From Perkinsus chesapeaki ATCC PRA-425 (lineage: Eukaryota > Protista > Perkinsozoa), in contig JAAPAO010000306.1 of the NCBI GenBank assembly GCA_013115145.1, positions 1 to 41,215 of the forward strand: DNA of 41,215 nucleotides, read 5' to 3'. The translations under genes were made by a program, and so were the position numbers. The notes beneath the pieces are model-generated. The model had not been told where the DNA came from, did not search any database, and was given only the letters and a program-made list of their open reading frames with translations. How positions within the stretch are numbered: position 1 is the first letter of the stretch; each line of letters begins with the position of its first letter. Below, in pieces: positions 8,849 to 29,576 of this stretch.

Positions 8849-9091
8849 ATATCAGTGTAAAATCTTTAACATCGGCTTGTCATTGTGTCCTGATATTCCC
8901 GTAAGTTAGGGTCAGGAACATGCTATGCTTAAATATGTCAAATAGACAGTATAGCTGGTCATGAAGGATAAATCAAAATAATTATAGTTTAATATATCTC
9001 TGTAATCTACAAGTGGAACAACTCTATAGATCGGGAATACATATTAATACGAATCTTAGCTTGAAGCTCGCTCTAAACTCCTCATTCAGTT

Positions 9092-11335
9092 ATGGCATTA
9101 TTATTATCATCTTCTTCTTCCTCGTTGCAACATCGTTTAATGCCATCTCTGTGCTGCCAACCTACTGTTTCCTCTACTACTACCCTATTATTATGCCTAT
9201 TCTATGCTTGTTTATCTGGTTTTGCTTATGGTTATGATTTATCTGTTATATCTGCAGTCCTCCCCGATATTACTTTACATTATAACTTAACATCGACCAC
9301 TAAAAGCCTTGTTGTCACACTATTCTCGATAGGTATGTTAATTGGTAGGGTTTCTGGTGGTATCTTACAAGATACTTTTGGACGTAGGATTGGCCTAGCA
9401 GTAGCTGATATATTTATTATTATATCAGTATCATTAACCTGGGCGTTGGGCCCTATATATTATACATTATTATTAATATGTAGATTATTACTTGGTATCG
9501 GCATCAGCCTTGCATTATTAATAGGATGCACGTATTTATCTGAAATATCCCCACCAAAATGGAGGGGTAGAATGGTTACCTCTCATGAATTATCGGTTTG
9601 TATTGGATCACTTATTGGTTTTACCACCACAGCCTTTACCAATAAAGTAAGATTAAAAATCAAAGGAGCGGTATGAAACATATTGAGAAATATGTCGATT
9701 AGTAAAATAGTTTTCTATTGCGATTATTATCTTCACGTAATGTATAAAATGTAATGTAATTATTTATTGTTAATAAATCTCAAATTCCTTCTTAAAGTGT
9801 TGTTTTCATTAGTCTTGCCTTCTCCTTTATTATAATTATTGTTGTTAGGAGGTCCTGACACCATGGGCATTAATAATAGGCATTGCGGTATTCCCAGCTC
9901 TATTACAGCTAATATTAACGTAATAATATAATTGGTTTTATTGATATTAATACTTTATAGATACTTCCTACCTGAATCACCAAGATGGCTGATAACAATA
10001 GCAAATGGAAGTAATACTATAGACGAGAAGGATAGGAGACTTACACAGTTTAATAAGGTGGTTAAAAGGTAATAAAGGATCTGATAAGGAGGAAGAGGAT
10101 ATATTATTAAAATTGGGTATAAATGTATATATCCTATGCCATTCTATTATTATTGTATATATCATCACATTTTAGATTGGGTTATTCTCTGAATGATGAT
10201 GAAGTTAAGAATATGATTAATTCAAGTACTGAAGATGAAGAGGAAGGAGCAGTAATATTAAAGGGGAGGAGGGGCAGCAGTCGGGTATATGTCAAGGATT
10301 CATTTCAGGTAGCTATCGATAATAATAAAATAACATGGTTAGATCGTTGTATCCATGCCATTAAATATAATAAAAAGGCATTATTATTAACAATAATAGT
10401 GTGTGGTACAGCATCGGCTTGTGGCTTTTATGCCTTTCAATCCTATGCTGCTGATGTTATTGCATTATTAACAGATAGGACTATACAATTTGTACAAGTA
10501 CATTATTTGCCTTATGTTGGCCTTATGAAACTAGCTGGTACAATAGTAGCACTGTTATTGATTGATGGCACTAGGTTGGGGGCTAGAGGTGGTAGAAGGA
10601 AGTTGTTATTAACATCAATAATAGGCATTGCTATAAGTGAAGGAATATTAGCAATATTATTACAAATAGTAATAATAATTATGATAATAATAATATTATA
10701 TATTTATTAATAGGTTAATTCATCGAATAATACAACTACTATACCTGAGGCGGTTGCTATTACTTTATTTTATCTTGTTATATTCTTCTGGAGCATTGGA
10801 TTAGGACCAATATTACTAATGGCTGCTAATGAGTAATAATAAAGGAGAAGAGCATTAGGTGTATTAATAGTATATAGTTATTTCACGACTAGTGTGGTTT
10901 ATATAATAAATACTTATTAGACAATTACTTTCATCATTACTTGATTCAGTTTCATTGCCATTTGATAATAGGTACATGCCAACATTGACCCGAGGTGTTG
11001 GTAATAGTATAGCCTTAACTGTTACATCTATATTTGAGATAGCCTACCAACAAGTATGTAATAATTTATAATATATTTATAATTATAACCTTTAGACATT
11101 TGAAAGTATGTTGTATTCGAGCCCATCTCCTTCCTTGCCATTTTTTATATATTCTATAACATCATTATTATCCTTTGTGGTGTTATTAAAGCTATTACCG
11201 GAGACTAAAGGCTTGACTTTGGAGGATAGCAGCAGTTATGCTATAACAGTTGGCACCGGCACTGGCAATAAGGATGAATGTAATAATATAGAATCTTCGG
11301 GTAGGATTAATAAGATACTTTTCAGGTCGGAATGA
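9092..11335 (+). CDS. MFS sugar porter family transporter (multi-exon)
   Basis: GFAYGYDLSVIS, DTFGRR, YLSEISPPKWRG, PESPRWL (after splicing), GRRKLLL, LPETKGLTLE. Confidence 0.92.
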
Positions 11336-11925
11336 GGTCGTTGTCGGTAATGGGTTATTGGATAGAATAAAGAGATTGTTTATCGGTAATAATAGATATA
11401 TGTCAATAAATAATAATAATGATACTAGTGATAATTAATATTTATATTAATTATATTGTGTTATTATAAAAGTACTACTAGTCATTTCATAATACTCGGG
11501 GGAAGGGGGTTAAGCAGTCGAATAAATAATGACCAAGTTAACTTATTATCATAGTTGCTGTTGTACTAATATATAATATACTATTAAATGATAATAAATA
11601 TAATGCATTATTAAATATCTTGTTTTTCTTTGTTCAGGTGGTGGTGGCTGCTGCCGTACTGTACGGCAAGATGGAAAGGAATAAACGTCATAAGTTGCAC
11701 ATTGGAGTTATATTAATTTACTATTACTACTACTTCTCCCTTCTGCCTGCTTTCGCATCATCTGTTACTCTTGTTTTCTTTATTAATAATTATTGTTATT
11801 GTCAATACGTATGGGGGGGGAGGGGGATGTTTGCCGAACTGCTGCTGCTGTCAATCGAAGGTGTTTTTTTGATATCATTGTATAGACGAGTGTTTAATTT
11901 GAATATTAGGTTGTTGTTGTTAATA

Positions 11926-13372
11926 ATGTTCAACAACGGTATCAATGGTAATACAGATGAGCTTTTGGATCCATCATTAAACGAAGGTCACCGTATAGTA
12001 TATGATAGGGAGATACCTTTAGAATTAAGAGTTATGGGTAATAATAAAAGAAGAAGGGTTAGTAGTAGTAGTTATTATTATATAATATTATTATTTAAGA
12101 TAATTGTATAATACTGGGGGGTTTGGCTATAGATTGTGAGTAGAATGATGCAGAATATGAGCAAGATATAAGGGACAGATATTGTGTTGTGATGATATGT
12201 TAAGATGTTGTTAACACTTGCTGATGTTTGAGTATCATTTTAATACTGTTGTTGTTATTATCTTCCTTCTTTCCTTTAGGTTCTTCTTGCCCTCCACCTC
12301 CACCTCCTCCAGTTGATGTTGGTACACTGGAAGCTATTAGATGCAAGGTTATGATATTGGGCGAGAATGAGAATAGTTTTAAACATTGCAGAGTTGAATT
12401 AACATCTGAAAATGATATATTCTTTCATTATACACATTCACTTGATGAGATGCAATTTAGTAATATAATAGCCTATAATAGCCTTTAATAGTGGTATTAT
12501 TTAGGGGAGGTACAGGAGGAGCAAAAGTTAATGATAGAATTCAGCGAATATGTTAATGTATTTATTAAGATGTGCAACTCCTGTATAGCAGGTAATAAGA
12601 TCAAAGAGCAGGAGACAATAATAGTGTTAGTAGTGATGATGAGATAGTAGTATTTATTATTCAGAACCACATGCCTTCTTGGGTGTATTGGTAATGACTA
12701 GAGATGGTACTGCTAGATTAGACTTTGTACAGAATATGGAGTAATAGGAGGATGGGAGGAGGAGGAGGTATGGATATAATACTATTAGATATAAATTTAT
12801 TGAACTATTAAGTGCTGAATTTATAGCATCACCAGAGGAGATTATTAAACAACAGATAACATATAGGTAAGTGATAGGAAGGGGGGGAGGGAGGGAGGTA
12901 TACTGTAATAGTACATATAATCCTAGCATCAAGCTAAGATTCCTTTGCTTGAACTCGCTTAAAGATACAAGACCGTTTAAATTATAGTTATCAATAGCAG
13001 ATAATGCGATATATTTACACATCATCATCATCATCGTAATCATTGGTGGTGGTGCCAGATATAATGCTATTAAGAGTAAATTACAAGCATCTCAAAGTAG
13101 ATTACAAGATTTTCAAGCTATAGTTAAATTAAAGAATCCAAGCCTTTTATTACAAATACAAAAAGGTAATATAACACTATTATTATAGTTAATATTATAT
13201 CACAGCAGCATCATCATCATCATCGAATGGTGGTATGATGGTAGTAGGAGGTAATAATAATAATACATCACTATCATCAAGTATGATGATGAGAAGTGGA
13301 GATAATTCCCCTATAGGAGGTAATAATAGAAGTGTTATGTCAAGTAGCAGCATGACCAGGATGATGGCGTAA
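11926..13372 (+). CDS. SAS6L: SAS-6-like protein (SAS6_N domain plus short coiled coil)
   Basis: Spliced exons give DPSLNEGHRIVYDREIPLELR, DVGTLEAIR, RVELTSENDIFFHYTHSLDE, QEEQKLMIEF, RLDFVQNMEYKFIELLSAEF, KLKNPSLLLQIQK. The protein ends soon after, lacking the long coiled coil of canonical SAS-6. Confidence 0.85.
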
Positions 13373-22493: not shown

Positions 22494-24034
22494 TTAATGA
22501 TTTAGGATGGTATTCCATCTGTTGGACCAAAAGTCATCTTGATAAGGTTTATCATAACTACTACCAAATAGTGGTGGATGATACCTAATGATAATAATAA
22601 ATAGGAAGGGATAAGAGGGGATTACCAATAATTAACAGCAAGATGCCCAACATCATCATTGGATTGTTGTTTGGTTGAATATGATATAACTTCATGAAAG
22701 TAGCTGGCAGGAAGATAAAGCATATCACCAGGCAACAGTTCTATTTCAATATATTTACTATAAGTATTATCAATAGATGGATTTGTGTTATGTAAACCTA
22801 ATATAAATAATATCATAATATTTTATAATATTATATTACAGAAATGCAATGGTCCTGCTGCTACTGCTGCTGCTGTATTGTTATTATCGACATCATCATT
22901 AGTATCATCATTAACTCTAACCTTTTTACTAACAGGCTCCTCCTCCTCGTCATCCTCCTCTTCATCATCAATATCATCAGCATCAGCAATAGCAATATTC
23001 AATAGTTTATCCAATTCATTATCATCTTCCTCTTCATTATTATTATTCATATTCATTATTAGATTTTGTCTTACCTAATCATCATCAATCTAATTATATA
23101 TTATTAAATATGACTATTAATACTTACCACATCAACCTCTCTAGCACCATCTTGTCTAACACTATATTTATTATTATTTAATTTATGACAGTTATAACAT
23201 ATCAAACCATTATCTAATATAACAGTATTATTATTATTATCATTAGTTGTTCCATTAGTATCCAATCCTTTAACTAATCCATCTGGACTATATATTCTAA
23301 ATATCTTCCTTCCTCTTAATAACATATATATATTATCATGATAATCATGATGTAATCCAGTACTACTACCATTTTTAGCATCACCAAACCACATATTAAC
23401 TTGATATTGTATTAGATTAGTATCCTTTAAAGGTGCTGGATGTAATGGTATCTAAATAATATTATTAGATAATAATAATTAATACCAATTATTATTAATA
23501 CCAGATTATTCTCTATTAATTTATCAATATGTGATCCCATTCTTTTAATAGGTCCATTATCCTCTTCAGTTAATGGTATATCTTGTGTTGTCATATAAAC
23601 CTTACTTGTAGCAACTCTATTAATGAATTCTTTAAATGTTATATGTAGTCTCTTATCATCACTCCAATCAGTCTTACCAAAACTATCATTTTCATCTAAT
23701 AATATTAATCCTACTTAATCTTATATTATTAATACCTTTCCTTTCCTCTGCAGTAACCATCTCATTACCAGCTACTTTAATCATATTATCGTTAGACATT
23801 AATTTAATATACTCCTTTGCCTTACCACGAATGACACATGGTTTTCCTATAAAACATATAATAACAACAACAACAGCATACATTACTTTGTGCTATATAT
23901 TTATTCCAAAATGCTTTAGTATCATCATCATGATCACAATCTTCTTCTTTTATCTCATCAACTACTTTATTATTATTCTGTAAAGTAGATGGGCCCTTGT
24001 ATTGACATGGTAGTAGTTTTGTTTCTTTAGACAT
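22494..24034 (-). CDS. JmjC/cupin_8 2-oxoglutarate Fe(II) dioxygenase (multi-exon)
   Basis: KPCVIRG, WFG...TGLHHDYHDNIYMLLRGRKIFRIYSP (HxD), LLPGDMLYLPASYFHEVIS (distal His), AVNYW|YPP. Confidence 0.88.
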
Positions 24035-24206
24035 GGTTGATATTTATGGTAGTAGTAGTTTGATATTCCTTAATGTACTTGTACTACTATAAATAAACTC
24101 AATAACAATAATAATAATACTTGTTAATATTTATTAACAGTAACATATAGGAATATGAACAATAATAATATAAATAATACATAGTAAAGAGTAACTAACA
24201 GTATCA

Positions 24207-26533
24207 TTAACAAGTAGGAATAACAGTAGTCTTATTATTGTCAGCAGCGGCAGCAGCCAAGGGAGTTGTTGTTGTTATTCCTTCTATTGTTGGCGTTGTA
24301 GATGATGAGGATGAGGATGGTGTAGATGACGGGTTAATATTACTTGATGATGAGGATGGTGGTATTGCTTGTTGTTGTTGCTTTTGTTGTTGTTTAGATG
24401 ATAATGTTTCTACTACTTCATTCAATTCAGCATCCTAAAATATACAATACTATATAATAATAATGATTGTTATTATTATTACCTGTATTGATGGATCTGG
24501 TGGTTGTGTTAGATTAGGTTCTACCATAGTAGCATATATCTCATCAATAGTATCCTCATTAACTCCACTTTCCAAAGGTATATTTCGTAAATATACAATT
24601 AGATTACGAATACCCGTTGAATACTCCTCATCTGGACCACTACTTGATGGTAACTAATAATAATTATTATTACCATCATTACAGACTATTAATAATAACT
24701 CTTTTATTATTACTATTGAGGTATGGGCAAAATCAATCATTTTAACAGTACCATTTCTTTGATCTGTACTTTCAGCATCAAATACAAATAATAAACTACC
24801 AGACCAGAATCGGAAACCGTTTAGATTTTGTAATATCTAATAATAATAACAATAATACCCTCCCCCCCCTAACGTATTAATCAATACTATTATTATTACT
24901 ACCCCAAGTAATCGTTCCAGTTTATCAACTAATCTTTTGATAAGTGTCTTTTTACAACATTCATCAACCGAATCAAAGAATGTATTAATAGTTTGAAAGA
25001 CTCCTTGCTCTGATTGTTTCCTTCCATAATATTTATTATAATAAACCCTTTCACCACTTATTCTGTCATATAATTGTACACCACACATACGGAAGGCAAG
25101 GCTGTGACTTGTTGTTTGCCTTGATTTCTTTATTTTACTTTCCATTTTAGCTTTTGATAAACCATATCTTACTGCTCTTTGTTTAGCCCCCATCTTTAAA
25201 TCTAATATACCTAATAATAACAATGTTATTATTATTACCTATATAAATAATATACGGTTAGTCTTTCATTATTACATGGTGTCTTCATTCCATGCGCTAA
25301 ATCTTCCAATACAACCTATATATTAATAACTATTATTACTATTATAACTAATGATTACATATTTCATCCTTTCATCCTTCTCTACCCTATAACCAGCAGC
25401 AGCTCCTCTATCTATTGTTATTGTATTATCATTATTGTTATTACTATTATCATCAACAACAACACCATCATTATTAATATTATCATCATTGTCTCCTTCT
25501 CCTCCTGCTCCTACCCCTTCTAGTTCCCCTTCATCTTTATCCTTCTCATTATCCTCTTCTTTATCTTCGCCTACTACTACATCCTCTTCTTCCTCTTCCT
25601 TTCCTTCATCTTCCTCTTCTTGTGTATAACCTCTATTATATTTTACTCCTCCTTTCCTTTTGCCATGATGTGCAGCAGCAGCTGCTGCCGCTACTGCTGC
25701 TACTGCCTCTTCCCTTTTCCTTCTTGACTTCTCTCTTTCTCTATCTATTTGTTCGTGTAATCTATGTTGTTCTTCTTCCCCTTCTTCCTCTATTTTCCTT
25801 ATCTTTTCCTCTTGTGCCCCTTTAGCTGCCTCTATAGATGCCCGTGGCTCTACTGCCCCTAATGGTGGTATTGGTCTTCTTGTTCTTGTTGATGGTGTAA
25901 TATCATATAATAATGTCGGACATGATGACCTCCTTCTTGCATGTGGTGATGAGGATGATGATGTAGAACATGGTGAGCTTGATGATGATGGTATGATCCC
26001 ACCAACCTCTTCACTATTAACATTGGTTCTTGGACTACCACTACTTGTTCTTCTTATTGATGATGGCTGTATGACACTCTGCTGCTGCTGCTGTTCCTCC
26101 TCTTGCTGCTGCTGCTGCTGCTGTTGTTGTTGTTCTTCTTCTTGTCTATTTCCTTTAGTAGTAAGATTAACCTATCAATAATCCCCTCCCCCCTCCTCCT
26201 CCTTTCTCCTTTACTATTACCTCTCCATAACATCTAGGTGTAAACCGTAATAGTTTAGGGCATCTTTCCGGTATTATACTTGAATAAAAGTGATATTCAT
26301 CAGGATTACATGGTTTTAATACCTATACCAATAAAATAATGATGACAACTATGCATAAATACCAAGTACATGACGACGACGAGGAGGAGGAAGAAGACGA
26401 AGATGATGAGGAGGACAGAAATATTATATGTTATAATAGTCATGAACCCCATTAACGCCATCATTTTATTATTATCTATCAGTAGTAAAGTGAGCCAGTA
26501 GTCCGATGTTGTTATTTAGTTAAGTAACAGTTC

Positions 26534-26577
<44 letters not shown>

Positions 26578-29390
26578 TTGTTACTATTATTACTACCAGA
26601 TATGGTGAATTTTGTGGTTTAACAAATCTAGTATGTCCTCCAACTTGTAAACCATATACAGTTAGTTGTTGACCAACTAATGATGATGTTGATGCATCTT
26701 CTTCCTCCTCCTCTTCTTCCTGTTCCTGCTGCTGCTCTTCTTGCTTATGGTTATCTTCTTTATTATCCCCGCCACCACCAGGCACCATCGGCACCCCTTC
26801 ATTCATTTTGCTCCTCTTCTCACCCATATCTAGTTTATCTCCCTTAAGTATATCATTATTATCATCTCCTTCTTTTTTAATGGCCTCCTTATCTTTACTA
26901 CTTCGTCCTCCTCCTCCTACTCTACTACTATTATCATCCTCTTCCCTTATTCGTTCCCCTCCTCCTCCTTCTTGTCCATTATGCTGTATTATATTAGTAT
27001 TATTAACTTCTCCTTCTTTATGTTGTAGTATGGTTATCTATACTCATAGTAATAACACATTATTATCATTCCCCTTACCTCTTCCTCCTCTTCCTGCTGC
27101 TGCTGCTCTTCCATTGATGATGCTTTTGGATAATGAGGATGCTCTATTGGCCCTATTGGTACTAATGTAAGCATCTTGGTTCCTCCGCCTCCACTGCCGC
27201 CTGGGGGAGCTGGTGATGTTGTAGATGATGATGATGATGAGGAGCAGGATGATGATGATGATGAGATATTATTATTTAATTTCTAGATAGGATATGATTA
27301 CTATTAATATCTTACACTGTACCACCTCTTTACTACCTTAACAACAACCTTATCATCTGACATTGATGTTATATCATCATTCTCATTCTTTATTAAATAA
27401 TCCCTTCTTATAGGTGATGATGACGATGACGAGATTTGTCCTTCATCTTTTCCTTCCTTCTCTTTATATATTATATTATCCTTCTCTTCCTCCTCCTTCT
27501 CCTTCTGTACTATACCCCCACTACTACTACTATCATCATCATCATCTTCATTCTCCTCCATTATAACAGCTACTGCAGTAGTATGTGCTCTCCTTCTCCT
27601 TCCCTTTATTATCTCTCCATCACCACCACCACTACAACAAGCATCCTTCTCCTTCTCTTCTTCTAATAATGCAGCACTACTCTGCCATTGTACTGGCATT
27701 AAATGTCCCCCTAATTGCTCAGCTACTGTTGTTGTTGTCTTATGTCTACATATAACCCCTTTTGCTAATAACCGTCTACGGTAATATCGACACCTTTTAC
27801 AATTACACTCCAACCTCCTATCCAACCGCAGCCGCCGCCGCAGCCGCCCTGCCTGCTGCTCAGAATGCTGAGACTGCTGATGCTTACTATCATTATTATA
27901 TGGTAATAATGATCTTCCTGCTGCCATCGCTTCCGCCTCCCCCGTCGGCAACTTTTCATTATCTATTATACTAGTATCTCTTTCCTCATTCTCCTTCTCC
28001 TCTTCTCCCTCTTCACCATCCTTACCCTCTCCTTCATGTAATGCTGCTATACACTCAATATCATCATCATCGTCTTCATCATCATCTTCATCAAATTCAC
28101 CATCTAATATATCATCTATAGTATATGAATCTGAGTCCATTTCATCATACTCATAATCATATATATAATCACCACCACCAACACTAGTATTCAGCAGAGT
28201 AGTGGTATCTTTATCCCCTCCTTCAAAACCACCACCGCCTCCTCCACCACCCTCATTTTCTTTTACTGCTGCTACTGCTGCCTGGTCTATACCATCCCTA
28301 GTGTCATCATCATCACCATCTACTGCTGCTGCTGCCTTTACTTCCTCTTCCCCTACTACTTCCTCCTCTTCTTTTATATTACCATCTTGCATGCCATCTA
28401 TAGTGATTACCAATTTACTATCATCATTATCCTCAACCACCCCCTTCTGTTGTTGCCCAGATCCTCCTCCTCCTCCTCCTCTAGATCCCACTACAGGAGA
28501 GTGAGGATGACCATGTTGTGCATAAGCCTAATAATAATACCATCACTTCTCCATGTTAATGTATCACTATTGTATATTACATTAGCAGCCATATGTAATG
28601 CTAACCTATAATGTGGTTTCTTTTTACCCAATAATGATAATGCTCTTGATACACTACACCACATTCTCTCACGGAATTCACACTAACAATAATAATAATA
28701 AACAGCAGGTAGTAATAATCTAATAACCATTATTATTACCTCTCTCCATGATGATAATATATTACTACATTGCGCTAAGAATAATCTAGTTACTGTAGGT
28801 TGTCCAGTCTTAGTTGATGATTTAAACCATCCTAGATCCCATAATACTTTACATTCAACACCAGCTTCTTCAACAGTCTCTCTAACTGCTGCTGTCTCTA
28901 AATCTTCATCAAATGTTTCAACTTTACCAGATGGTATTGTATGTGTCATTCTATCAGAACCATGTCTTATGGAATTAACTACTAATATATTAGTACCAGA
29001 TTCATCATATACCACACAACCAGCTCTTAATTTATATTCTTTACTAGGTGACCATACTTCTGGATCTGCATAATGTGTAGTTGTTATATCATTATCACTA
29101 TTATATCCAATATCGTGATGATTATTATTATTATGATGATGGTTGTTATCTACTCTCATAGCTGGTTCTTCACGTAGCTCATATTGTTGATAACAGCATG
29201 TATTAGATGCTATTGATTTATCATCATTATTATCTTCATTATTATCTTCCGAATAAGATGATGATGATATCGAATCATAGTCATCATCACCAGAAGTAGA
29301 GGAGGTGGAGGAAGGAGAAGGAAGTGGTGTATTGGAGGTATAATGAGGTATAATATTATTAGTAGTAACAGAAGAAGAAGACGACGACAT
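24207..29390 (-). CDS. Fusion protein: N-terminal DIPP-type Nudix hydrolase + low-complexity linker + inositol polyphosphate kinase (IPK family, IP6K/IPMK-like); ~12 exons, ~1,450 aa
   Basis: Nudix: YKLRAGC, PSGKVE...AAVRETVEEAGV, ERMW..KP. Kinase: QVGGH, LKP..EYHFY..FTPRCYG, VLEDL..KTP|CILDLKMG, RMCG, NKYYGR, WSGSLLFVFD, KMIDFAH, GPDEEY. Introns 28683-28739, 28528-28580, 27283-27336, 27038-27078, 26323-26596, 26172-26220, 25316-25358 and 25211-25275 are all GT-AG and frame-preserving. Confidence 0.8.
26535..26577. repeat. (AGT)n microsatellite, ~14 units, intronic
   Basis: Perfect agt run within kinase intron 26323-26596. Confidence 0.95.
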
Positions 29391-29576
29391 GATAATAAAT
29401 AATAAAACAACAACTACAGCTAACATCATCATTAAACTCATAAGCCAGATAAGATAAGCTTTAGTGGCGTCACGGCTGTATAAGTAGTAAAGACGATCTT
29501 ATTAATACAATATTGTAGAGGAATCCCCTCGGCTTGTCTAATCCGTGTTGGTGTGAGAGAGAGATCTTCGGCCGGT

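Follow-up and report, generated by a model that had tools for sequence, protein, structure and literature searches.

A 41,215-nucleotide stretch of the genome of Perkinsus chesapeaki ATCC PRA-425 (assembly GCA_013115145.1, contig JAAPAO010000306.1, positions 1 to 41,215; this whole stretch is called the window in what follows) contains, on its minus strand between 29390 and 24207, a locus that probably represents one gene for a ~160-kDa protein, in which a Nudix hydrolase domain is joined through a linker to an inositol phosphate kinase of the IPK family. This protein would be an expanded form of the NUDIX-IPK proteins that we found in dinoflagellates. The combination of the two domains is a real, conserved and hitherto unrecognised architecture rather than a new sequence, and from it we infer a function in the metabolism of inositol pyrophosphates (PP-InsPs).

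The gene model was assembled by hand from the sequence and joins 12 exons across 11 introns into a single frame of 1457 codons (coding sequence 4374 nucleotides (nt)) with no internal stop. The frame encodes a DIPP-type Nudix domain, a low-complexity linker of ~600 residues and an intact IPK-family kinase, in this order. The introns measure 57, 53, 54, 41, 274, 49, 43, 65, 66, 60 and 48 nt. The first eight had been listed in the initial annotation of this DNA, with sizes, GT...AG ends and preserved phase that we found to be right; the other three finish the kinase. All 11 introns begin with GTA and end with TAG, and these short AT-rich segments between the open frames have a G+C content of 27%, against 38.5% in the exons.

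A model of this kind might result from the chance stringing of GT...AG segments, or it might describe a decaying locus with a kinase pseudogene downstream of a live Nudix gene; it is hand-built, it consists for a large part of a mostly low-complexity linker, and its 3' two thirds have no RNA. We analyzed the continuity of the locus with a shortest-path search that led from exon 2 to the QVGGH motif of the kinase and permitted only GT..AG introns of 30-120 nt. The sense strand of the window needed three introns, compared to eight for the antisense strand and 11-14 for shuffled sequences. Likewise, P. olseni needed two introns (13 in controls) and P. marinus three (12-13 in controls). Since the sense strand can be connected with far fewer introns than the controls, the continuity is more than chance. 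Further, P. marinus has no interruption at the sites of introns 3 and 8: a 686-codon open reading frame (ORF) spans exons 3-4, and the segment VVLEDLAHGMATPCILDLKMG is uninterrupted. Because this species reads straight through, the joins at these two introns are confirmed at the DNA level. With the uniform ends and composition of the introns, and with kinase exons that are conserved between species (8-47 silent against 0-6 replacing changes per exon) and retain all catalytic motifs, an artefact or a decaying locus is a very improbable explanation.

The junction that decides on the fusion is intron 2 (28528-28580, 53 nt), which separates the end of the Nudix domain in exon 2 from the linker. 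The peptide LALHMAAN|AYAQHGH, which the initial annotation had put across this intron, is present as claimed, and the frame without splicing indeed ends at a TAG at 28493-28491. We compared the junction in four Perkinsus loci: the window, P. marinus and two haplotypes of P. olseni. In the four-way DNA alignment exon 2 is highly conserved, the donor GCTAAT|GTAATA is invariant and the (T/C)AG acceptor is conserved. The interior of the intron is unalignable, with lengths of 52, 53, 48 and 63 nt in the four loci, and conserved coding sequence resumes after it. Both P. olseni haplotypes have an intron 2 that is a multiple of three and free of stops, so that one ORF of 500-503 codons leads from SEFRERMW into the linker, spliced or not; the GenBank models of P. 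olseni splice the intron out (HMAAN|AYAQHGHPHSP). In the first 12-13 codons past the junction, 5-7 changes are silent and 2 replacing, and the differences by codon position are 2, 0 and 7-9. As these changes are mostly silent, the peptide appears to be selected in the frame that exon 2 hands over. The fusion reading is thus borne out by an intron and a following peptide that are conserved in three other Perkinsus loci, and by the fused proteins of dinoflagellates described below.

Exon 3 (27337-28527, aa 252-648) forms most of the linker and begins with the conserved AYAQHGHPHSP. Its frame is open for 407 codons (28527-27307), of which 397 are exonic up to the donor of intron 3, and stops abound in the other two frames. 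Most of the linker evolves fast and is of low complexity; it yielded no Pfam match in any of its exons, and is open in the window, in both P. olseni haplotypes and in a second P. marinus contig. Three islands stand out in exon 3: DSDSYxIDD (382-390), CxCxRCRYYRRRLLAKGVI...TTTTVAEQLGGHLMPVQW (492-533) and RAHTTAVAxIM (564-574). Silent changes outnumber replacing ones in the Cys/Arg island and, in comparison with P. olseni, in RAHTT, whereas DSDSY, and RAHTT in comparison with P. marinus, have slightly more replacing than silent changes. Intron 3 (27283-27336, 54 nt), which would measure 66 nt with an alternative in-phase donor at 27348, and intron 4 (27038-27078, 41 nt) follow from the model and the chain search; they enclose exon 4 (27079-27282, aa 649-716), with the island K(M/L)LTLVP(I/V)GPI and 6-8 silent against 1-2 replacing changes. 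Exon 5 (26597-27037, aa 717-863), based on the model and the Perkinsus comparison, completes the linker and opens the N-lobe of the kinase (SLVGQQLTVYGLQVGGHTRFVKP). In P. olseni the exon-5 ORF has no methionine upstream of QVGGH, so the kinase cannot begin there.

Two further observations concern the linker. The Cys/Arg-rich island (27662-27822, minus strand) is 84-88% conserved in the three Perkinsus species and contains a second QxGGH motif, like the one at the start of the kinase N-lobe; it may have been left by a partial duplication, or it may serve as a regulatory element. In P. olseni an additional intron interrupts this island, between ...GGHLMP and VQWSSAS (contig L003, ~11900-11981; contig L004, ~9033-9124), which is missing from the window and from P. 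marinus.

For evidence from RNA, the index contained only two runs that carry the label of this species and are presumably RNA, both small (~4 Mb of contigs). Contigs cover exons 1-2 at a word depth of ~10-70, and those with no differences map to exon 1. Intron 1 (28683-28739, 57 nt, GTAATAA...TTGTTAG) is spliced in both runs, where the contigs skip it ('skips 57, CT..AC'). At the other end of exon 2 no contig enters intron 2: the contigs terminate precisely at its first base, 28580, which argues against termination at the TAG at 28491. A Nudix gene ending at TAG 28493-28491 was rejected as the main form for three reasons: the conservation of intron 2 as an intron, the absence of RNA contigs from it, and the selection on the peptide that comes next. 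Of the transcript across 28740-25210 that the initial annotation had proposed to look for, we could therefore see the splicing of intron 1 and the lack of retention of intron 2; a transcript of the linker and kinase was not seen in these two small runs.

Several observations weigh against a single gene. Beyond exon 2 the two runs contained no contigs on exon 3 or further downstream other than low-complexity scraps, and searches with the kinase exons alone in the same two runs gave a share of 0.00, which is a strong imbalance between the 5' and 3' parts of the locus. A contig of 294 nt leaves the donor of exon 2 and continues for 206 nt, for which 24100-29500 offers no match at ≥90% likeness. 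The public annotations split the locus: P. marinus has a Nudix gene (205 aa) and, 145 nt apart, a separate model of 433 aa, and two P. olseni assemblies have truncated Nudix models of 244-329 aa, with no kinase annotated over the next ~9 kb. Finally, the reference sequence of P. marinus ATCC 50983 has an in-frame TAA in the linker (contig L005, 12791-12793). These observations would be explained by two expression units on one conserved frame, namely an abundant mRNA with the Nudix domain only, formed through an alternative 3' exon or early polyadenylation, and a separate mRNA for the kinase, made from an internal methionine of the linker (e.g. M685 or M787) after spliced-leader (SL) trans-splicing; the full-length fusion would then be rare or absent in Perkinsus.

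We consider this explanation rather unlikely. There is no in-frame stop between the domains in the window, in both P. olseni haplotypes and in the second P. marinus contig, and splicing at intron 2 would leave a Nudix-only mRNA without a stop codon. The junction peptide and linker islands are under purifying selection in the frame of exon 2, exon 5 of P. olseni offers no start codon, and the sister lineage, the dinoflagellates, expresses the fusion. Both RNA runs are very small, and the strain behind them differs from the window at 28611 in all contigs. As to the 206-nt continuation, a divergent allele or an alternative 3' exon could account for it; the 63-aa read-through of exon 2, compared with the protein collection, gave no candidates. 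The TAA of the P. marinus reference may reflect an error in sequencing, or else a nonsense allele by which the fusion would be split in ATCC 50983: run SRR12548988 (P. marinus) has a contig that reads GAA at this place (contig L001, 1111-1113), the sole difference in 4218 aligned bases. In tblastn searches, Nudix and kinase were colinear and on the same strand in P. marinus and in both P. olseni loci. Metagenome contigs scanned for the spliced exon 2-exon 3 junction and for the conserved DNA of exon 2 gave 0 matches each. One gene for the whole protein hence remains our preferred reading, next to which a shorter isoform with only the Nudix domain, or a divergent expressed allele, is possible in this species.

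Tight spacing is normal in this region, which counts in favour of two expression units. The next gene on the same strand (23822-24034, minus strand) has its ATG at 24034, ~175 nt past the stop codon of the fusion, and a conserved counterpart of its first exon, MSKETKLLPCQYKGPST..., occupies the corresponding position in P. marinus. Because this neighbour begins only ~175 nt away, we dropped the argument that the distance between the Nudix and kinase parts is too short for two genes. The spacing is compatible with polycistronic expression or with expression resolved by spliced leaders.

The RNA contigs provided two additional observations on the 5' part of the gene. A second variant of exon 1 (28740-29078, minus strand), ~8% divergent, has a depth of ~49-69, compared to ~19-38 for the variant identical to the window, and could be a second haplotype or a paralogue. 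Another contig fits 36 nt at 29386-29421 (minus strand), upstream of and into the ATG at 29390, and then continues with 126 nt of unlike sequence; an acceptor-like ttag|ctg lies near 29420. This suggests that a spliced 5' untranslated region (UTR) exon lies further upstream, or that the transcript is trans-spliced.

Domain, fold and family searches were made with single exons or with database proteins as queries. A Pfam scan run on the exons detected both domains expected from the initial annotation, with NUDIX in exon 1 (E 9e-12) and IPK in exon 9 (E 8.5e-22) and exon 10 (E 3.6e-9). Exon 1 (28740-29390, aa 1-217) consists of a low-complexity N-terminus with the conserved island YQQYELRE, followed by most of the Nudix domain (from ~aa 113; Nudix box aa 154-178), and exon 2 (28581-28682, aa 218-251) adds its C-terminal part, FRERMW...KKKPHYRLALHMAAN, which aligns to DIPP1 residues 109-134. 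The motifs named in the initial annotation were found at 119-125 (YKLRAGC), 167-178 (AAVRETVEEAGV) and 222-225 (ERMW). In the Nudix box, SGKVETFDEDLETAAVRETVEEAGV, the metal-binding glutamates of RE..EE.G are intact; the box departs by one residue from the strict Gx5Ex7RE[ILV] spacing and has a threonine in place of [ILV], features that it shares exactly with yeast DDP1, with which it forms a gap-free alignment.

The subfamily of the Nudix domain emerged clearly from these searches. Against the sequences of solved structures, the top 18 matches of exon 1 were DDP1 or DIPP1/2 (one labelled MS0616), and the first match to another subfamily was an Ap4A hydrolase at 2e-4. The P. olseni orthologue (86% identical), searched with its full domain, matched DIPP1 residues 14-134 at 1.6e-10, with the first non-DIPP match at 1.3e-4; in this alignment the YK.RA.C, S.RH, RE..EE.G, R.R.W and KP positions are kept. 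The window domain itself carries YKLRAGC, SIRH, RERMW and KKKP. In DIPP1, the basic residues that clamp inositol phosphates are K18, R20, R41, R115 and K133. A profile of the fused family matched DIPP1-3 at 7e-11 to 7e-9. In Foldseek searches with the model of a fused dinoflagellate protein, DDP1 reached a TM-score of 0.80 by target, and the first non-kinase match in Swiss-Prot was AtNUDT18. Judged by sequence over the whole domain, it is closer to DIPP/Ddp1 than to other Nudix subfamilies and is placed in the DIPP subfamily; the earlier DIPP/NUDT3-like assignment thus stands, as no other solved Nudix protein ranks as high as DDP1 and DIPP1-3. Compared with the P. olseni and P. marinus proteins, the Nudix exon has 86-90% identity. 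In exon 2, amino acid identity to both species is 97%, with 11-12 silent changes against one replacing codon change.

The kinase is encoded by the remaining exons. Exon 6 (26221-26322, aa 864-897; VLKPCNPDEYHFY...CYGE) contributes the ATP-binding lysine and the glutamate of the N-lobe and is 100% identical at the amino acid level to P. marinus and P. olseni, with 8-15 silent changes. Before it, intron 5 (26323-26596) is swollen to 274 nt by an (ACT)n microsatellite and other insertions, whereas its counterpart in P. marinus and P. olseni has ~30-65 nt. Exon 7 (25359-26171, aa 898-1168) is a low-complexity insert of ~270 aa that interrupts the kinase domain; its frame is open for 282 codons (25326-26171), 271 of them exonic, and is partly conserved with P. 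marinus. The short exon 8 (25276-25315, aa 1169-1182; VVLEDLAHGMKTP(C)) is continuous with exon 9 in P. marinus, which lacks intron 8 (25211-25275, 65 nt); in the window this intron splits the cysteine codon of PCILDLKMG. The PxxxDxKxG motif and the inositol-phosphate-binding segment (TTSHSLAFRMCG) are in exon 9 (24903-25210, aa 1182-1284), SLL and IDFAH in exon 10 (24714-24836, aa 1285-1325), and the C-terminal kinase helices (PDEEYSTGIRNL...) in exon 11 (24483-24653, aa 1326-1382), which has 91-96% amino acid identity to P. marinus and P. olseni. Exon 12 (24207-24434, aa 1383-1457 and the TAA stop) encodes a low-complexity tail. This last exon and introns 6 (26172-26220, 49 nt), 7 (25316-25358, 43 nt), 9 (24837-24902, 66 nt), 10 (24654-24713, 60 nt) and 11 (24435-24482, 48 nt) are as given by the model.

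All IPK motifs that had been noted are intact in the joined protein: QVGGH at 847-851, PCILDLKMG at 1181-1189, SLL at 1298-1300 and IDFAH at 1318-1322. The N-lobe motifs LKP and E..FY are present as well. Among Perkinsus species the kinase exons are 88-100% identical in protein. For exon 9, identity is 94-96%, with 34-47 silent and 4-6 replacing changes (47 and 4 against P. olseni). To judge from these codon changes, both catalytic domains are under strong purifying selection.

The kinase subtype is less clear-cut. The functionally named proteins among the best sequence matches were all IP6K and none were IPMK or IP3K. Two other kinds of search did not separate the subtypes: in the profile search of the PDB, human IPMK scored 76 bits and EhIP6KA 66 bits, and in the Foldseek searches IPMK and IP6K scored alike (E 1e-15 and 2e-14), the E-values of S. 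pombe IPMK, IP6K3 and IP6K1 differing by no more than one order. An ESM Atlas search with the fused protein gave no subfamily signal: the look-alikes, none of which reached 0.75, were limited to bacterial NUDIX-APH fusions and generic IPK clusters. In a tree of the kinases, which had no labelled IPMK or IP3K reference, the myzozoan sequences formed a clade outside the animal IP6K and the fungal Kcs1-like clades. Since IPMK and IP6K are about equal in the profile and fold searches, and since the apicomplexan sister group has its kinase N-terminally in long proteins, as in the gene that PlasmoDB labels IPMK1, we call the kinase a member of the IPK family that is IP6K-like, its closest named proteins by sequence being IP6K/Kcs1. 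The earlier description as an IP6K/IPMK-type kinase holds, every catalytic motif of the IPK family having been recovered.

This leaves room for a fusion that is real, with activities that do not oppose each other on the same molecule. The kinase could be IPMK-like and make InsP4/InsP5, or the Nudix domain could mainly trim a 1-beta-phosphate, polyphosphate (polyP) or diadenosine polyphosphates (ApnA); the two activities could then drive flux to a single species (5-InsP7, for instance) or link the synthesis of PP-InsPs to the turnover of polyphosphate, instead of working as a futile-cycle switch. Apart from the searches that do not separate IPMK from IP6K, this agrees with an apicomplexan sister clade that resembles, in the N-terminal place of its kinase, the Plasmodium gene labelled IPMK1 by PlasmoDB (PMC12694804), and with the substrate ambiguity of DIPPs, which accept 1-, 5- and 4/6-InsP7, InsP8, polyP and Ap5-6A (PMC13573052). 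It is at odds with the named sequence matches, all of them IP6K, and a DIPP fused to a kinase of a PP-InsP-making family most simply indicates a shared pathway. We regard non-opposing activities as unlikely and prefer to read the two domains as acting in opposite directions.

To find the same architecture elsewhere in the alveolates, as the initial annotation had proposed, we ran an exhaustive HMMER search with kinase exon 9. Among the best 150 matches, three proteins (626-677 aa) also carry a Nudix domain, which matches that of the window at E 1e-20 to 3e-24; one of them is a transcript of Kryptoperidinium foliaceum (P0078; MMETSP0120, CAMPEP_0176044732). With one of these three as query, ~15 clusters annotated with both PF00293 and PF03770 (578-766 aa) were obtained in dinoflagellates. 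They include an 'unnamed protein product' of Polarella glacialis (P0168), whose gene in the genome spans 5.7 kb, as well as P0086, P0026 and P0163-P0175, and some are ~2-kb mRNA-like contigs, each with one ORF and UTRs. In 13 fused proteins of 33-55% identity, REx2EExG and all kinase motifs are invariant. We looked for a spliced leader on the mRNA-like contigs L006 and L007 and found none, so these contigs may be incomplete at the 5' end. The 2.2-kb Logan contig L007, which encodes the fused protein P0165, has a Nextera-type adapter at both ends (L007, 1-25 and 2190-2209).

The dinoflagellate proteins resemble the Perkinsus protein in having an N-terminal DIPP-like Nudix domain and a C-terminal IPK with the same conserved motifs. 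Their Nudix domains and those of Perkinsus are mutual closest relatives (E 1e-25 to 2e-16, versus ~1e-10 to DIPP1). The dinoflagellate proteins are compact, with a disordered tether of ~40-60 aa, whereas Perkinsus has the ~600-aa linker with its conserved islands and the ~270-aa insert in the kinase. An AlphaFold2 model of one fused protein has a mean pLDDT (predicted local distance difference test score) of 80, above 90 in both domains, with the disordered tether at residues 156-198, and its folds match IPMK/IP6K and DDP1 with TM-scores of ~0.8 by target. The search in the ESM Atlas with P0086 also returned bacterial NUDIX domains fused to phosphotransferases of the APH/RIO type, in clusters of 50-140 members, a formally similar pairing that is unrelated.

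In the kinase tree, which is unrooted, Perkinsus and a few stand-alone environmental kinases (Shimodaira-Hasegawa-like approximate likelihood ratio test (SH-aLRT) 98) are sister to the fused dinoflagellate clade (93). Together, the Perkinsus and dinoflagellate kinases are sister to a clade with kinases of Plasmodium, Cystoisospora and Chromera (SH-aLRT 93), in which the apicomplexan proteins are long and have the kinase at their N-terminus; its member from P. gallinaceum is named only 'inositol polyphosphate kinase, putative'. The gene tree of the kinase mirrors myzozoan relationships. The kinase has its closest stand-alone relatives in P0002-P0005, which are unfused and weigh against our reading; one is in a compact contig without a Nudix gene nearby. 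The fusion probably arose once, in the common ancestor of Perkinsozoa and dinoflagellates, and the stand-alone relatives would have come about through later loss or fission; the order of these events is inferred, as the tree is unrooted.

The window is a compositional mosaic over its length (1-41215), with a gene-dense, AT-rich island of ~26-34% G+C at 7-25 kb and flanks of ~45-52%. The region of the fusion gene, at 25-29.5 kb, has 36-41% G+C.

If the domains act as their families suggest, the kinase would add a beta-phosphate to inositol hexakisphosphate (InsP6), or to InsP5, and the Nudix domain would remove beta-phosphates from PP-InsPs and possibly cleave polyP or ApnA. A single polypeptide would hold synthesis and breakdown at a fixed 1:1 stoichiometry and could set a PP-InsP level that responds to ATP, phosphate (Pi) and metal ions, the two domains being tethered by the long, mostly disordered linker with its few conserved islands. 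In this form, Perkinsozoa and dinoflagellates would share a second, independently evolved bifunctional PP-InsP enzyme that sets 5-InsP7, or total PP-InsP, in the way that PPIP5K sets InsP8, and is perhaps regulated or localised in Perkinsus through the Cys/Arg-rich and acidic islands that its enlarged tether has gained, a proposal on which we are evenly divided.

Searches of the full-text literature, of recent reviews on PP-InsP enzymes and of a survey of eukaryotic inositol kinases yielded no description of a Nudix-IPK fusion. This is in line with the initial annotation. The architecture is not unique to this genome and is already present, unnamed, in public protein sets. A review of June 2026 states that the DIPP subfamily 'is not found in protists', lists bifunctionality solely for the histidine-acid family and calls the retained bifunctionality of PPIP5K extremely rare (PMC13573052). 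The Perkinsus and dinoflagellate domains would correct the stated absence of DIPPs from protists, and the gene model would repair the annotations of P. marinus and P. olseni, in which the kinase of this locus is either separated from the Nudix gene or absent. As a 'Rosetta stone' link, the fusion points to one shared in vivo pool as the target of both enzyme families. With ~630 aa and two confidently folded domains, the compact dinoflagellate proteins offer material for studying how tethered kinase/phosphatase set-points depend on ATP and phosphate. Perkinsus species are parasites of shellfish with a polyphosphate-rich biology, and phosphate and energy signalling in this genus is of practical interest.

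Among known proteins, the Nudix domain has its best sequence and fold matches in DIPP1-3 (NUDT3/4/10/11), yeast Ddp1, S. pombe Aps1 and the NUDT17/18/21-type proteins of Arabidopsis. It has in common with DIPP1 the positions GYKxRAxC, SxRH, REx2EExG, RxRxW and KP, and its box spacing is DDP1-like. The known DIPPs are, however, small stand-alone proteins (~140-190 aa), whereas the DIPP-type domain of Perkinsus is fused to a kinase. This kinase has QxGGH, LKP, ExxFY, PxxxDxKxG, SLL and IDF(A) in common with IP6K1-3/Kcs1 and IPMK/Arg82 (PF03770), and the kinase fold of the fused-family model matches EhIP6KA and IPMK (TM ~0.8 by target). Unlike the animal IP6K and fungal Kcs1-like proteins, it belongs to a separate myzozoan clade with dinoflagellates, apicomplexans and chromerids. 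Another alveolate kinase of the IPK family fused to an unrelated enzyme is encoded by the Plasmodium HDA2-IPMK2 gene (PF3D7_1008000; PMC12694804). Its partner is a histone deacetylase and not a PP-InsP phosphatase, so that this fusion is without the logic of pathway reversal.

The closest functional parallel is PPIP5K/Vip1/Asp1/VIH, a 1-kinase/1-beta-phosphatase, which likewise has a PP-InsP-making kinase and a phosphatase that removes the beta-phosphate on one chain. PPIP5K/Vip1 has been treated as the sole enzyme that both makes and destroys an inositol pyrophosphate. By analogy, it and the proposed fusion would share a common logic of fixed stoichiometry and set-point control. Their building blocks have unrelated folds: PPIP5K has an ATP-grasp kinase followed by a histidine-acid-phosphatase domain, while in Perkinsus the Nudix hydrolase comes first and the IPK (PDKG) kinase second, and Pfam found no ATP-grasp or His_Phos_2 domain in the protein, only NUDIX and IPK. 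The fusion is thus an analogue of PPIP5K/Vip1 in its logic and not a member of that family. If it does combine an IP6K-like kinase with a DIPP, it would be a second, structurally unrelated solution to the problem of PP-InsP control that PPIP5K has solved.

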